From positions 37,386,001 through 37,450,000 of the forward strand of contig NC_135759.1 in NCBI RefSeq assembly GCF_052425735.1: a stretch of 64,000 bases of DNA. The letters are read 5' to 3'. The translations under genes were made by a program, and so were the position numbers. How positions within the stretch are numbered: the stretch's first letter is position 1; every line of letters starts with the position of its first letter. Positions 13,258-62,570 of the stretch are shown here, piece after piece. This DNA is from Oculina patagonica. Lineage: Eukaryota. The notes below the pieces were generated by a model. The model had not been told where the DNA came from. It ran no database searches and worked only from the letters and a program-made list of their open reading frames with translations.

Positions 13258-14007
13258 GGCCCGGGTCGCACTTGAGACAAACATTTGAAATGTTGCAAGA
13301 TGTTGAGGACAATGTTTGTCTCGGAACTTGTCCGAGACAATTTAAATTGTTGTATTTAGGTTCGCACTTGGACACACAAAATTACCCGTCACTTGATACT
13401 GTGTTAATTTTGCAGCAAAAATAACATTCAAAAGGGAGAGACAAACCGGTCGCATTAAATCAAATCAACACAAATTTTTGTTTCTACCTTCTTAATGGGA
13501 GCGTTCATAACGATGTCGAAGCTCATATAAATGAAAGCATGCTGCCGTATAAAGCGGAAAATTTGATGAGCAAATTGCTGTGCATCATGATTCAGACTGC
13601 GGCTACAAAACAGTTGCCCTAGCCTATACCGATCTTTCCTTTTATTTGAATTATCTTGGCGAGGTTTTTTTTCCCCAAATAATGGAAATGTTCGGTCGAA
13701 AACTGCTTGAATTCGTATTCATCAGACTAGACAGTAAAAATATGTGAAGCGAACAATTTTTTAAGGATCACTGAACTGATTGATACTTTTGTCACAAGAA
13801 AAACAATTTTTGTTCGTTGTTCATAAAAAGTCCTGCGTTAAGGCAGGATGACGGCTTTTTTGAAGATTTGTTTCTGTGGACAAGTTTTTGTCCGCGTAGG
13901 GACAAGTAGGTCGCACTTGGCGTGGTCAACGGATGACAGGAATCTGACAATTTTTTTGGGTTTCAAAATAAACTTGTCCTGATTTTGTCCCAAGTGCAAC
14001 CTGGGCC
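13258..14007. mobile_element. PIF/Harbinger-like MITE
   Basis: TIR GGCCCGGGTCGCACTTGAGACAA / TTGTCCCAAGTGCAACCTGGGCC, TTA TSD and internal GGTCGCACTTG repeats. Confidence 0.8.
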
Positions 14008-14785
14008 TTAGTATAAGGTCAGATCCATGAATCACTTTATTTATAGGTTGGTTAATTAATTACTTAAATAAAGGTGCATACAATGTGAGTCAAGGCATAT
14101 TATGTGCATCACCAATCTTCACTTCTGTCAAGATTCAAATGGTTGTGATTAATTTTATGGATATAATTTTCACACACACATTGTTCCAGAACTGTTTTTC
14201 ACACATGACGATTCCATGATGATCTTCCATTCACTATTTTCACCGTTCCCATACACCTTGTTTACCCCCACTTGGGATTTGCAATGACCTGCAGTCATCC
14301 CAAGAGAAATTAAAAACAATGCTTATGCAAAGATTTTTTTTGGTAAACAAGTTGTATCATGGGATTGTGAAAAAGTGAATAAAATTATATAATTATACAG
14401 AAAATTATTCGGACTGTAGAAAATAATGATTTAGATGAAGCGGGAACAAGTACGTGGGATATTTAATCAAGGATTATATCCAGTTGTCATCTTATAGGAT
14501 GGGGGGGGGGGAGGGGGGGCAGTTAAATGTATTATTAAAAAACCATGATGTTAGGAAATTCCAATAATATGTAAAATTAAGCATGTTTACTAAGACTCAT
14601 CCAATCCAATGGAATGGCTACCAATTAAAATAATAGAATTCAGAAGCGATGACCAACTCTTGAGTAGCATATTTCTTACTTTGTCACAGCGTATAATGAT
14701 GTTACTGTACTCATCACCAATGGTGTCTTTTCTTTGAAATTTGCAGGCTTAACAATTTTGCCCAGTTCATCTTATTTGAGTTAAT

Positions 14786-56848: not shown

Positions 56849-57131
56849 TAATCTGAAGAGGTTAGTTTAACTAAATACCCCAAATAATTTTACATCTGAA
56901 GAAATTCCCTACCATAAATTGGTCATTTACAAGCTGTGGTTTATACTTTTGTAATGCTACAGAAGCACTTACATGTAATGCCCTTGGGTGTATGCCGCAT
57001 GGTTTTATCATGTCATTGAAAGAAGTTAAATTCGAGCTTTAGCTGAATAATAATATTGTTATGAATGTGTATAAAATGGCAAAACTACTTGTTAGTAGTA
57101 ACAATGTTCAGGTCCCTGTGAGCTGGATTTG

Positions 57132-57455
57132 TTATGTGCTACTCTCTGTTTTGTTGAAGAAGCTATTTGATGCAAACTCTTTGTTTTCAGTTTTTTCAAG
57201 TGCCTGTTCAGCTTCCCTAATGTCTGAGTGAATGGCCTCTATAAGGGATTCTGAAATAAAAGCAGAGGAGAAAAAAATTAGTGATGTTAGACGTTGCAAG
57301 TGGTTTAAACATTCAGGACAGTCATTAATAGCCTGCGAACAGGCTCTATCGTGAGGAGCTCTACCCCTCTCTTCCCCTCCTCAAACAGATCCTTGAGTGG
57401 AGAGCCTGTTCACAGGCCAAGTCATTACACTAAACACTACAGTAGGTGGATAATA

Positions 57456-57494
<39 letters not shown>

Positions 57495-60368
57495 AATGTG
57501 AAAACACTTCCTAGAATATGGAAATAAAGGTAAGATTTTAATCTTAAAATTCAAAAATGATTTGAAAAAAGGTGAAAATCTAGTGATAATGTTTCAGCAA
57601 CCCTGCAAACTACAGTGCACTATAGTTGTCTCTCTCCTCCACAGAGGCTCCATAATCAGAAAACAAAAAGAAAAAGGAAAAAAAAACGACTAATGAAAAA
57701 AAAGGGCTGTGCACGTTTTTTTCTCTCTTCAGGCTCTACATGCTTACATGTACTTTTCACCTCTCCCCATTTCAAAGCAATAAAACAAATTAGAAAAGGC
57801 CTCTGCGGAGGAGAGAGCTAGCATGTGCAAACACAACAAATGTTGTTTAGTGAATGAGCAAAACTGTAAGTACAAGTCATGATATGAAACAACTAATAAT
57901 TACCAAAATATGTGCTAACCTAATGATGGGAAATTCTTTTCGGGTCGAATAAAACCTAAAATGACAACACTAAGCTCTGATCCATAAAAGTCATTTTCAA
58001 ATGAATGAATAATGTGAGTCTCCTGAAATGAAAACAAAAGAAAGAACTGTTTAGTTTGAAATCACAACAGCCACATTTCATTAATATTAATTTACCGAAA
58101 TATTTACTGACTTGTCATCAGGATGGCTTGACATCGCAAATTTTTACAAAATTTTCACTTGATTACTTTTCGAGTCACATACTGATAATATATAAATTGG
58201 CTTTCTTCACGTTCATTAGCAGATAGTTACCCACCATTGATTTTTTGGTGTTATTATAAAATGGATTCCATCCTATACTCATGACCATCTTGTACACAGG
58301 CCCTCTGTTGACACTTGCCCAACCATAGTAAATTCCAGTACTAACTGCCTCTGGTAAATTATCCACTACATTCACTGGGAAGTTTGCTGCAAGGAAAAAC
58401 GTGGAATGAGTGGATAACAAACAATTGTTTTAAATAATATATCCTGCGCATTTGGCCATCCACTTGTGAACAAAAGTTTAACCTCAGCAGGGTGAAATTA
58501 TACCTATTCCCAAAAGTATTGAGATGCTTGCCTCTTCTTGAGTAACTTGGACACATTTCACCCCACACTTCTTCAATATATCCACCCCCCCCCCCCGAAA
58601 CAATGTTGGATTTGCTATCTAGAAGACTTGTTTTGTTTGTGTACAAATTACACTGAAAAGGGGGAGGGGGAGTGGTTGACAATCTACAGGTACATCAGAT
58701 TTGAAGTGGAAAAATGGAAATATTAAAATAAGAACTTATTTCCACCATTCGTCTCAACTACTTTTGACACCCATTGTAGCTAAATAATATTCTCTCATTA
58801 AACTTATTTGAAGCTTGATTGGTTCCATAAAAATTTCAAATGTTCTTATCTCTCCCTTATGTTCCACAGGTTACAATCTAGGTACTGTCATCACCTAAAC
58901 ATTTTGCTGACAGACAACTGTCAGTGTTTGATAGAACAGCTTGCTGGCAGACTAAATAACCTTGCCAAGGTTTGGTTATTTATCCACAGATGTTAGCTGC
59001 TAGTTGAGATTCAGCTGCCTCTACAGTCAAGAATGTTTGTCCATGGCAGACCTGTTTGTTAGTCTGAGCCAACAGATGTCTCCGAACAACATGCACAAGA
59101 ACGACAAGAAGCACTTCTGAGATTCAAATTGTGATTTTTTTGTTTTGCTGTTGTTGTTGCTGTAATTGTTGTACCACAGTTCATTCAGTTTAAACTTTTG
59201 TTTGGTCTGTAAGATTAAAAAAAAACTCAAATTGCAAAATTCAAGGTTATGAGATCAGCTTTTTTTTCGAGCATGAGATTCCGAGAAGGGAAGGCAAGAT
59301 TTCGAGACTCGCCTAAAATTTGCCGTGATTTATAATATCCCAATGACCATTCTATTCCCTTCATGTATACACCCATGACTCTTTGTTCTTAAAATATGGT
59401 CCACATGAAGTGTAATATTATTGAGATTATAAGAGATCTAAAGGAATTTTTAAGATTTGTTTGGAAATATCCAAAGCATTAGGATCGCCAGAGATTTTCT
59501 GAATCATAAAATTGTTACAGATCTTTGGGATCATTAAGATACAGAAGTAAATTATCTTCAATACTTTCTTTGGTATCCAGGAGTCACCATACAGGAGTCG
59601 GGGTGATTTGGTCTATCCAGGAGTGTTGCCCTCAATACACAATGACATGTAATTTTGTATACACTTCTTTCTTTATCATCAAAACAAAAGTGGACCTACT
59701 GTGTGCCTCTTTTTCAAAGACATATTTCTTAAGTCAGAATGTATCTTAGCAAACATAACAGAACAAAAACACAATTAACTCTTTCAAGAAACTTGAATTG
59801 TCAATTGCAATAATTTGCATACCGTATCTCTTTTAAAAAAATAATTTTCATTGCTGTTGTGTTAAGATATGTTATATGTTATGAGTGAATTGACATCTTC
59901 ATATATAAAAATAAGGGAACCATAGAAAATATGACTAGATAGGGATAATTTCAACCAAGAAGATAACCCATTACTTGAGGTTGAAACAACTTTAAGCATG
60001 AGTCAGATTTGGTTCCAATAGAGTCAATGAACATGATTACATACTATATACAAAGGGAGATGACGAATGAGAATCGCTAGAATGGCTCAAAGCAATAGAT
60101 AAAAAATCGTTTTGACGTGGTAAACTTAGAGCACGAACACAGTTCTAATAGCTTCAACAAATGTCTCGATTGGTCTCTCCGTACAACACGGAAAAACGGA
60201 TTAGAAAATGTTCACAAATTATGAAGATCCGGTTTATGAACATTCATTATCAACCTGTAACAACTCACCCGTGGGAATGCCTAACTCCTTGCTGCCTCTT
60301 CCAAAACCCTTAACTACCTCTCCTCGACAAAAATACGGAAGGCAACTTGTAACCAGGTCTGAAGGCAT
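57132..60368 (-). CDS. RFK: Riboflavin kinase, 157 aa, 4 exons (canonical exon 1a)
   Basis: Exons are 60368-60269, 58386-58235, 58022-57920 and 57250-57132. Recognisable motifs are [34 protein letters not shown] and SIGWNPFYNNTKKSMETH. Confidence 0.97.
57329..57419. mobile_element. 91-bp palindromic mini-transposon (Academ-like) in RFK intron 3
   Basis: TAGCCTGCGAACAGGCTCT...AGAGCCTGTTCACAGGCCA with flanks AGTCATTAA/AGTCATTAC. Confidence 0.65.
57458..57493. repeat. (TGAT)9 microsatellite
   Basis: Read directly from the sequence. Confidence 0.95.
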
Positions 60369-60699
60369 CTCGGCCACCACAATAAAACGAATAACTAGAG
60401 TTCTCAAAGCAAATGTAAAGAGTTGTAAAGCGGATGTTCGTGACGATAATCGGATGTTCGTTTCACGTGCGCGAGAAACCGCAGGCCAGAAAACACGAAA
60501 GACAAAGTATTACGCAACACAAAACTAGCCGCCGGCGTTTTGTGTCGAGTCTGCCAAATAATTCGGAAAATAATTCGAAAGAATGCGATAGTAGTGAAAG
60601 AAAGTGCTAACATGTAAAAGAAAAAAGCTGAGAAATGAAAGCTCGGAAAGATTTCCGCAGAGGACCCTACATTAATTATGTATGCAACTATTTCATACT

Positions 60700-61328
60700 A
60701 TCCCTATAAAAGATTGCATCTGGCATTGGCATCCTAAAGCGTAGCAGGTCTTTTGTTCCATTTAAGACATTACTATGTATCTATAACTCTTCAGTACAAC
60801 CCCATTTTGATTTTGTAGTGTCGTTTGGGGAAATTGCAGTAAAACTCTGGCATAACTACAAAAACTGCAAAACCGTGCTGCGCGTATCTTGACCTCTTCT
60901 TCCTACGATGCCAATGCTGATGATCTTATTGCAAGACTTGGCTGGAATAAACCGATTCCATTATTTAAAACAGCCGTGATGTCTATAATCACTCAATGGT
61001 CTTGCACCTGACTACCTTAGGACAATGTTTTCTATAGAAGCGACGTCCTACCGAGAGGGCCGCGGGACTAACTGTTCCGCTCCCCCACACTATTCAAAGT
61101 TTTAGTATAGAGGCGGTGTTGGAAAGACCTGCGACCGCGCACCCATCTTTCCGGCTGCAGAGTGTAAAATCAATTTTTAACATCACCGCATATGGAAAGC
61201 AGGTTTCTTTTTATTTACTTTGTAGACGATAATGTAATTTAAATTTATTATGTAAAATAGGTATTAAGTATTTTAAATAAGTATTATGTATTTTAAGTCC
61301 TGATGATTTTTACCGTGTTGAAATAAAG

Positions 61329-61393
<65 letters not shown>
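60700..61393 (+). mobile_element. Decayed CR1/L2-type LINE 3' end with long (ATT)n tail
   Basis: The broken translation LQKLQNRAARILTSSSYDANADDLIARLGW...NGLAPDYL is typical of the post-RT region. AATAAA is followed by (ATT)n at 61329-61393. The 5' boundary is approximate. Confidence 0.75.
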
Positions 61394-61394
<1 letters not shown>

Positions 61395-61733
61395 CATAAA
61401 CAGCAATCATGAAAAGAACGAATCAGTCAGAAAATTGTATGCATAATTAATGTAGGGTCCTGTGCGGAAATCTTGCCGAAAGCTCTGATCCTCGAGGTAC
61501 TCTTGTCCCAATTCGGGTACCTTTAGAGTTTTTGTTGTTGTCCGATCGAGTGAGTCGAGTAGCCTGTCGTAGGCCAAATAAAAGATCAAATTTGTGAACA
61601 TGATCTTTTTAATCAATGATTTTAAATCTATATATCTTTATGTTCGATTATGAAAATTTTGTTTTGAAGCTCCCACAGTGTCAGAGCCCCTGACCGGCTT
61701 CGTGTAAAACAAACGTATGCCTACTTCTCATAC

Positions 61734-61857
61734 CTGTTGGAATGCCTAACTCTTTTCCTCCCCTTCTCTTTCCTTGCACAACTGGAGCGCGTAGAAATAA
61801 AGGCAGAAATGGCAAAACCGAGGAGCTAACTTGTCCACTGTGTATTGTAAGCACCAT
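61734..61857 (-). CDS. RFK: Second (alternative) RFK first coding exon 1b
   Basis: The start is atcATGg. It encodes MVLTIHSGQVSSSVLPFLPLFLRAPVVQGKRRGGKELGIPT and ends at acag|gtatga, with the same codon position and phase (1) as exon 1a. I found no separate downstream exons 2-4 for it. Confidence 0.75.
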
Positions 61858-62083
61858 GATTATTTTTGATCTTGCGAAATGAAATGACTGTCGTCTTTTA
61901 AATTTTGTCACGTCTCCGATGGCTCCTTTAATAAAGGTGCTCAAAACGTGGTTTATCTCTGAGTCCGGCTCATTCTGAAGGCCAATGGGGGCCATGGCCA
62001 GGTGGCGCAGCCAGCCGCTAGTTGTGCTACTTTCACTTTCACGACTTTCACATGGACAATATTTTGAAAGTCTGTAGAAAATA
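61858..62083. promoter_or_regulatory. Putative bidirectional promoter RFK exon 1b / TDRKH
   Basis: There are 226 bp between the divergent start codons, with a GC-richer core near 61975-62020. Confidence 0.55.
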
Positions 62084-62570
62084 ATGCCTTCCCTTTCCAA
62101 CGAGCAGAGAGCAGCAATTGCTATTGGCGTTCCTGTAGTAGCATTATTGCTATATCTATGGTACAGAAGACGCCAAAATTCTCATTTTCTAGACGAAGAT
62201 GAGGAATATACTCACGCGGAAGAAGGCGAGGAGGTTGCGTCTGCAAACCAAAGAACTGTGGAAGTCAAAGTCCCTCGTGCGGTAGTGGGCGCTATCATTG
62301 GCAAGTCTGGAGCGAATATTAAAAAGATAGAAAAGGATAGCGGAGCTCGGATAAATCTAAAGGATGAAAATGAAGGAAATGAAAGCGAAGAAAGAATCGT
62401 GCTCATTCAAGGTGAACGCGAGAAAACGAAGCGAGCGGAAATTTTGGTGAAGAAAATTATCGCGGAACAACCAGTTATTAAAACGGAAGATATTTTCGTT
62501 CCTCAGCGTGCTTGTGGAAGAATTATTGGCAAAGGAGGACAGACAATACGTCACATGTGTTCAGTTTCAG
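62084..62570 (+). CDS. TDRKH: Tudor and KH domain-containing protein (TDRKH/Papi-like), first coding exon; gene continues beyond the window
   Basis: An N-terminal TM anchor (AAIAIGVPVVALLLYLWYRRR) is followed by KH1 (VGAIIGKSGANIKKIE) and the start of KH2 (CGRIIGKGGQTIR). The donor is cag|gtgggt. The Tudor domain is not in the window. Confidence 0.85.

Follow-up and report, generated by a model that had tools for sequence, protein, structure and literature searches.

How does an enzyme as small, single-copy and highly conserved as riboflavin kinase (RFK) come to carry two versions of its adenosine triphosphate (ATP)-binding loop, a segment that is near-invariant in animals, with both of them under selection? 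The question is raised by a 64,000-nucleotide stretch of the genome of the coral Oculina patagonica (assembly GCF_052425735.1, contig NC_135759.1, positions 37,386,001 to 37,450,000; this whole stretch is called the window below, and coordinates are counted from its first letter). On its minus strand lies an RFK gene with two candidate first exons, 1b and 1a. We consider it highly likely that this is a single RFK gene in which two tandemly duplicated alternative first exons give two isoforms with different ATP-binding loops, and that the pair is both ancient and held by purifying selection. In the mechanism we posit, a transcript from an upstream promoter, head-to-head with a neighbouring KH/Tudor gene, would carry exon 1b and skip 1a; a transcript starting inside the first intron would carry exon 1a; and each first exon, with its own ATG and a donor of the same phase, would splice directly to the common exon 2. 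Each first exon would then probably have a separate promoter. The core of this had already been proposed in a reading made from the letters alone (the sequence-only reading), namely two alternative, selectively conserved first exons yielding isoforms with swapped N-termini, and the evidence set out here supports it.

Two candidate first exons upstream of one set of common exons

All exons of the gene lie on the minus strand. Exon 1b (61857-61734, 124 nt) opens with an ATG and holds 41 codons plus one nucleotide, so that it ends in phase 1 at the donor G/GTATGA (the slash marks the exon border); its 41-residue peptide, with the C-terminal end ...LPLFLRAPVVQGKRRGGKELGIPT, comprises a disordered basic N-terminal segment, strand β1, an L1/FlapI loop of variant sequence (GKRRGGK) and the first half, 'PT', of the PTAN motif. 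Exon 1a (60368-60269, 100 nt) likewise begins with an ATG and ends in phase 1, after 33 codons plus one nucleotide, at the donor G/GTGAGT; it encodes the canonical metazoan loop GFGRGSK together with the 'PT' of PTAN, and corresponds to positions 4-29 of the Pfam Flavokinase profile. The remaining exons are common to both isoforms and exist as a single set, with AG acceptors and GT donors that preserve the reading frame: exon 2 (58386-58235; acceptor ...ccttgcag) contributes the 'AN' of PTAN at its start as well as the flavin-binding strands, and likewise matches the Pfam profile, exon 3 (58022-57920; METH...) contains the catalytic Glu region, and exon 4 (57250-57132) supplies the C-terminal helix and the stop codon, with a 3' untranslated region (UTR) that extends below 57132. 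The spliced products would be 157 residues long with 1a and 165 with 1b, and are the same from the 'AN' of PTAN onward. The sequence-only reading had described a paralogous exon 1b with its own ATG, a GT donor at the same position and phase, and one set of exons 2-4; all of this was confirmed.

Is the resemblance between 1a and 1b more than chance? Across 24 homologous codons the two exons encode 16 identical residues, 11 of them with different synonymous codons and five with the same codon, and the nucleotide identity is 44/73. The 11 synonymous pairs listed in the sequence-only reading are exact. In the 529-Mb Oculina genome we found one Flavokinase locus, and the exon 1b peptide matches nothing genome-wide other than exon 1b itself and exon 1a. 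Since the two exons are each other's sole matches, and since all related genomes examined have both of them in the same order, their resemblance is not a matter of chance. In a six-frame search of the genome with the Pfam Flavokinase profile, exon 1b alone did not reach E<=1, and the whole 1b isoform matches that profile well. The genome's own gene model (P0001, 'hypothetical protein ACROYT_G007587, partial [Oculina patagonica]') is the best protein match to exon 1b, at 100% identity, and uses 1b and not 1a.

Two other gene models were considered and rejected. The first was an upstream start for 1b, given that no stop codon interrupts the 81 codons above the 1b ATG and that an in-frame ATG stands among them at 61995. 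It was ruled out by a contig of a run labelled organism C (X3), in which two 1-nt insertions and one 1-nt deletion (61905, 61906, 62007) break the frame, and it is also disfavoured by the ends of the 1b contigs, at 61893 (run X25) and 61866 (run X26). The frame broken in organism C is the one that the NCBI 'partial' Oculina model enters. The second was splicing of 1b into 1a: the AG that stands just before the 1a ATG in Oculina is not conserved, being GAA in five corals, and the joint was not seen. Indeed, no 1b to 1a joint (61734>60368) is listed across the four runs aligned, although this is contig-level evidence and rare forms could escape it.

Transcripts joining each first exon to exon 2

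Our evidence from RNA consists of Logan contigs, assembled from runs labelled 'RNA? (a guess)', from which neither levels, strand nor transcription starts can be read. Of the words in the 5-kb stretch of the gene, fourteen runs contain only 13-20%, as one would expect of transcript contigs that lack introns, and several of these runs also contain exon 1b. Four runs from four studies were aligned to 56900-62700. The joint of 1b to exon 2 (58386>61734), which skips 3347 nt and reads CT..AC on the plus strand and hence GT..AG on the minus, is present in runs X3, X25 and X26, that is, in three studies and under two organism labels. The joint of 1a to exon 2 (58386>60269), also GT..AG on the minus strand, was found in run X25 only, in one contig with 39 nt on its shorter side. 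Both junctions predicted in the sequence-only reading, 61734>58386 and 60269>58386, are thus present in spliced contigs. The joints between exons 2 and 3 (58021>58234) and between exons 3 and 4 (57250>57920) are present as well, and the contigs reach 56900. Exons 3, 2 and 1b are covered in one piece by a contig of X26 (record 19), which stops at 61866; a contig of X25 (record 14) stops at 61893. That the splice joints are canonical, and that the genome has a single locus, speaks for an origin of these contigs in RNA.

Within exon 1b, organism C differs from the window at 61768 and 61786, and a count of codons places both at third positions, where the changes are synonymous (AAG>AAA at Lys30 and GCT>GCG at Ala24). 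The description of 1a as the canonical exon needs to be divided in two: it holds by motif, and it does not hold by usage, considering that the 1b junction was detected more often than the 1a junction in the assemblies examined and that the genome's own model uses 1b.

Conservation and selection in corals

A search of the region with exon 1b returned 19 proteins, of which four are full-length and spliced with the 1b N-terminus: one from Oculina, Orbicella faveolata 'isoform X1', and two from Logan contigs of 1-2 kb. The remainder are genomic open reading frames (ORFs) in which exon 1b continues into the intron. When full-length 1b proteins served as the profile query, further forms appeared in Desmophyllum, in Montipora foliosa (X1) and, with the loop GKKRGG, in Nematostella vectensis (X2), together with canonical partners in Orbicella (X2), Porites and Acropora (X2); those of Montipora (X2) and Nematostella (X1) were found subsequently.

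To these we can add eight distinct coral genome loci, which were annotated with the exon peptides of the window. In all eight, exon 1b has 41 codons, an ATG and the donor G/GTA, and exon 1a, which lies 272-1366 bp downstream of 1b, has 33 codons, an ATG and the donor G/GTGAG or G/GTAAG, both exons being free of indels. The acceptor context of exon 2 is the same in all eight genomes, and the order is always 1b, 1a, exon 2. Over the 28 pairwise comparisons of these corals, the ratio of nonsynonymous to synonymous change (omega, by the Nei-Gojobori method) is 0.16 for the whole of exon 1b, with 0.11 in its core (codons 15-41) and 0.27 in its N-terminal codons 2-14; it is 0.09 for the whole of exon 1a and 0.04 for its core, and 0.10 for exons 2 and 3. 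When 1a is compared with 1b inside each genome, synonymous differences are saturated, at a proportion (pS) of 0.57-0.97. Low omega in corals and saturated pS between the paralogues mark exon 1b as an old, selected coding exon, and these comparisons show both first exons to be kept by purifying selection. This agrees with the old duplication under purifying selection that had been deduced from the codon pattern, and a 1b-type exon is present not only in the corals but also in Nematostella and an anemone-like taxon. Two outcomes had been named as speaking against that proposal, the lack of any 1b to exon 2 junction and the loss or frame disruption of 1b in relatives; we found the junction, and an intact exon.

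Could exon 1b nonetheless be a decaying or unused duplicate, a pseudo-exon whose transcripts are noise from the neighbouring promoter? Some upstream transcription does overlap it, as the 1b contig of X3 is fused with the transcript of the divergent KH/Tudor gene. However, the ATG, frame and donor are intact in eight corals and two anemone-type taxa, with no indels and an omega of 0.16; 1b is spliced precisely to exon 2 in three studies; full-length 1b messenger RNAs occur in several species; and frame disruption in relatives was looked for and not found. We therefore hold a pseudo-exon to be exceedingly improbable.

A subtler alternative is that the two exons matter for the control of expression only, with promoters specific to tissue or stage, and that the difference between the proteins is functionally neutral. 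Alternative promoters are commonly regulatory, exon 1a has its own upstream region, and in corals exon 1b stands at a conserved, putative bidirectional promoter with the KH/Tudor gene. Yet neutrality would not hold the 1b coding sequence at an omega of 0.11-0.16, nor would it keep an R-G-G signature and an FLR strand from corals to anemones in spite of saturated synonymous sites; and a second promoter could be supplied by a non-coding leader exon, without any duplicated coding sequence. An effect on expression alone is, in our view, improbable, and two selected coding versions of the first exon explain the locus better.

Age of the duplication

How deep the duplication goes was assessed within Hexacorallia. 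In both assemblies of Nematostella, a variant exon (GKKRGG), with an ATG and the donor G/GTAAGT, lies ~440 bp upstream of the canonical exon, and in a probably actiniarian taxon (L018-L020) a GFQRGG exon lies 505 bp upstream of a canonical exon that resembles the one of Exaiptasia. A search of the region with the Nematostella variant exon matched itself only. The 1b-type exons of corals and anemones have derived states in common: F-L-R in β1, R-G-G as opposed to R-G-S and, in most cases, a middle Gly replaced by a residue that is basic or polar. When the 24-residue cores are placed in a tree, a single branch separates the 1b rows from the rest (support 75/98, 74% of bootstrap trees), though 24 columns lend no more than moderate support to one origin of 1b. 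Among 1.84 billion representatives searched with a profile, 21 matched below 1e-10, and those inspected are nearly all of the 1b type; one of the 21, P0145, contains two canonical GFGRGS segments, and canonical RFKs otherwise rank ~10 bits below the 1b-type matches.

Considering that a 1b-type exon lies upstream in corals and anemones alike, and that synonymous divergence between 1a and 1b is saturated, it follows that the duplication predates the split between these groups. On this comparison it goes back to the common ancestor of stony corals and sea anemones or further.

A variant loop in a conserved fold

The isoforms differ in the N-terminal peptide, in strand β1 and in the glycine-rich L1/FlapI arch, which is GKRRGG in 1b and GFGRGS in 1a. 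Both belong to the same family: the 1b isoform P0001 scores 131.3 bits against Pfam PF01687 (Flavokinase; cut-off 19.6), over profile positions 4-123, and the 1a isoform of Orbicella (P0022) scores 137.3 bits. Both also have the PTAN motif, as GIPT/ANFP spanning the junction of exons 1 and 2. In RFK, the phosphates of adenosine diphosphate (ADP) and the Mg lie beneath an arch made by the L1 loop together with a 3-10 helix, the contacts with the nucleotide being mostly main-chain, and in PTAN the Thr and Asn ligate Mg and the Pro stacks on adenine (PMC1079889). The assignment of the ATP/Mg site to the PTAN motif and the L1 arch in the sequence-only reading agrees with that work. The FlapI loop is mobile, opens the nucleotide site, and is part of modelled contacts with a client protein of flavin mononucleotide (FMN) (PMC10086132).

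Against the metazoan consensus GFGRGSK, exon 1a is exact, whereas exon 1b (GKRRGGK) lacks the middle G but has retained the first G, the R-G and the K. Among the 120 best metazoan RFKs, 110 read G[FYL]GRGS, and the nine exceptions are all cnidarian 1b forms. The 1b form of Montipora, GMGRGG, retains the middle Gly. Some of these departures are familiar from solved enzymes, the loops being GKGRGG in Trypanosoma brucei (3BNW) and GAGRGGKELG in Corynebacterium ammoniagenes (5A88), so that two of the three departures of the 1b loop have a precedent in solved structures.

What would this do to the fold? AlphaFold predicts the same secondary-structure elements for the Oculina 1b isoform (predicted local distance difference test, pLDDT, 80.7) and the Orbicella 1a isoform (82.2), with equally low confidence in the loop block (58) in both models and the first 14 residues of the 1b isoform disordered. 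The predicted 1b structure superposes on the closed ternary complex of human RFK (1Q9S) with a template-modelling (TM) score of 0.93 and a root-mean-square deviation of 1.0 Å. As modelled, the 1b isoform is compatible with the six-stranded β-barrel fold of RFK. The kept first Gly, Arg-Gly, Lys and PT, together with the loops of solved RFKs and these models, lead us to think that both isoforms are active kinases.

Perhaps, on the other hand, exon 1b gives a catalytically dead or strongly impaired protein of the RFK fold, serving as a flavin-binding, scaffold or regulatory isoform. GFGRGS is nearly invariant in metazoan RFKs, 1b breaks the motif at three positions, most 1b forms place a bulky basic residue at the middle Gly, one Nematostella allele has H for P in PTAN, and human RFK is modelled to make non-catalytic partner interactions through FlapI (PMC10086132). 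However, in corals PTAN retains its T and N and the loop its invariant R-G, with the Lys that follows, and everything downstream, including the catalytic Glu region, is common to 1a. RGG and GK both occur in solved RFKs, and Montipora has even kept the middle Gly; moreover, the contacts of the arch are mainly main-chain, and the model superposes on the closed ternary complex. On balance a dead or crippled 1b isoform seems unlikely to us.

What might the second isoform do?

If both isoforms are kinases, they may differ in the behaviour of FlapI, whether in the handling of nucleotide and product or in the hand-over of FMN to client proteins, or else in localisation. The loop is the most conserved feature of 1b, which points to FlapI behaviour, i.e. 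to nucleotide or product handling or to contacts with partners. For localisation, there is a precedent in human RFK, in which translation from an alternative start codon extends the N-terminus and so supplies a signal for mitochondrial targeting (bioRxiv 10.1101/2025.03.27.645657), so that dual localisation of an RFK would not be new. The 1b N-terminus is 8 residues longer than that of 1a, and in robust corals it has zero acidic residues in its first 35 positions and a net charge of +5 to +7, compared with +3 for 1a; it is also under some constraint, as the omega of codons 2-14 indicates. Through this longer, acid-free and basic N-terminus the localisation of 1b may differ from that of 1a, and is possibly mitochondrial.

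Taken further, one gene could have supplied hexacorals with two flavokinases of distinct biochemistry over several hundred million years, with the choice of promoter coupled to a swap of β1 and L1 (FlapI), and with 1b as a specialised enzyme. We advance this tentatively, as something possible rather than probable. A specialised 1b might be sent to mitochondria, might differ in nucleotide preference, in product inhibition or in FMN hand-over to client flavoproteins or, in corals, might be co-regulated with the KH/Tudor (TDRKH-like) gene. The two isoforms offer a natural, evolution-tested pair of variants for probing the role of L1/FlapI in nucleotide binding, product release and cofactor delivery.

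Several observations weigh against our interpretation of the locus and its isoforms, and should be set beside it. The RNA support is contig-level, and the RNA nature of the contigs is itself a guess of the index. In the Oculina species group the 1a junction is thin, with one contig in one run, entered as 'between: not known'. For the putative 1b promoter we have the contig ends at 61866-61893, and promoter choice is itself a deduction. The replacement of the middle Gly by Arg, Lys, Gln or Asn in most 1b forms is unseen in solved RFKs, and for this reason the activity of the 1b isoform is not assured. In Nematostella vectensis, the variant exon differs by one C/A substitution between assemblies (L016:5473-5553 vs L017:6001-6081), so that the 2007 assembly reads PT where the newer one reads HT; His for Pro falls on the adenine-stacking proline of PTAN, and is either a polymorphism or an error. 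Lastly, the idea of targeting is weak: the 1b N-termini of Montipora, P0030 and Nematostella contain acidic residues, and that of Nematostella is short.

Comparison with known systems

The UGT1A and clustered protocadherin loci have tandem, homologous variable first exons with their own promoters. Duplicated alternative first exons are thus a known gene design, and the RFK case adds to the genes that have it. The likeness is close, with first exons in tandem, each with its own start and a donor of the same phase, that splice to shared exons and skip any variable exon downstream. The differences lie in scale and in what is varied: RFK has only two variable exons, both very short (33 and 41 codons), and what they encode is a portion of the catalytic site where a small metabolic enzyme binds its nucleotide, and not a domain for the recognition of substrate or ligand.

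Human RFK (PDB 1NB0, 1NB9, 1P4M, 1Q9S) is of the same family and fold, aligning to P0001 without gaps at an E of 2e-58, and has the same GFGRGSK..GIPTAN segment as exon 1a encodes. Unlike the hexacoral gene, it has one first coding exon, with N-terminal variety coming from an alternative upstream start codon, whereas in hexacorals the whole segment of strand β1 and L1 arch is swapped by a duplicated exon. The duplication is thus a second route to N-terminal isoforms of RFK, beside the human alternative start codon with its mitochondrial signal. The RFK of T. brucei (3BNW) and the RFK module of the C. ammoniagenes FAD synthetase (5A88) resemble 1b in having Gly for Ser and, in T. brucei, also Lys for Phe; they differ from it in keeping the middle Gly, which most 1b forms replace with R, K, Q or N, and in being single-form enzymes.

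The nearest thing to a record of the two isoforms is in RefSeq, where models named 'riboflavin kinase(-like)' X1 and X2 in Orbicella faveolata, Montipora foliosa, M. capricornis and Nematostella vectensis are of the same two types. The 1b form is X1 in Orbicella (P0008) and Montipora and X2 in Nematostella, and the 1a form is the other model (X2 in Orbicella, P0022). These are uncommented pipeline predictions, in which the paralogy of the exons, their age and the selection on them are not recorded. In the literature on alternative first exons or promoters of RFK, and on coral RFK, we found no paper describing the isoforms. The earlier remark that no description of this was known for animal RFK needs qualifying: we too found no paper, but RefSeq already has models of both forms for several cnidarians. 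There is a caution here for coral genomics, as a conserved protein is overlooked wherever the gene model has a single isoform, and in Oculina the model has 1b only. RefSeq models called 'riboflavin kinase isoform X2' exist for many decapod and stomatopod crustaceans too, and those listed (P0031, P0034, P0037, P0041, P0055, P0071, P0086 and P0112) have the canonical GFGRGS loop.

Neighbouring sequence

Upstream of exon 1b, on the plus strand, lies the first exon of a divergent gene (62084-62578, ATG at 62084), which encodes a hydrophobic N-terminal segment and KH_1 domains (89 bits). Its orthologous loci also carry a Tudor domain, and on this domain content the neighbour is TDRKH-like. It stands head-to-head with RFK exon 1b, with ~225 bp between the two ATGs, at every coral locus fetched; the arrangement was not found at the Nematostella RFK locus. 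The interval from ATG to ATG (61858-62083) contains the ends of the 1b contigs, at 61866 (X26) and 61893 (X25), and the starts of the KH contigs, at 62037-62051. It would be a bidirectional promoter region holding the transcription start of 1b. In X3 the RFK-1b contig continues into the KH gene, so the 5' ends of the two genes touch or overlap; this merged contig fits a bidirectional promoter, and a single transcript is not demonstrated by it.

Why is the spacing between 1b and 1a in Oculina as wide as 1.4 kb? Between the two exons, at 60643-61479, sits an insertion of ~837 bp that resembles a non-autonomous DNA transposon of the miniature inverted-repeat transposable element (MITE) kind, with 45-nt terminal inverted repeats (60643-60687 and 61435-61479) that are 91% complementary. 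In all four runs this stretch is covered by high-depth contigs that stem from related copies and whose loose ends fall at the repeat borders. The element is missing from the interval in other corals, where 1b and 1a are separated by 272-1245 bp (272-625 bp in related corals). The wide spacing is specific to Oculina, due to the inserted element, which stands outside the mechanism proposed here. A long (ATT)n/(AAT)n microsatellite lies inside the element, at 61318-61406.

Mobile elements also occur near the gene elsewhere. At the locus of the closest relative (L007), ORFs for a hAT-type transposase (Dimer_Tnp_hAT, DUF4371) occupy 12570-14671, ~0.5 kb downstream of RFK exon 3. By tblastn this locus yielded no exon 4, and the transposase ORFs occupy its expected position.

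Two minor features of the window may be mentioned. A run of 134 N at 5566-5699 represents an assembly gap or a masked stretch. In the RFK 3' UTR, contigs of X3, X26 and X1 have a 4-nt deletion at 57018, which is maybe an allele or an assembly difference.

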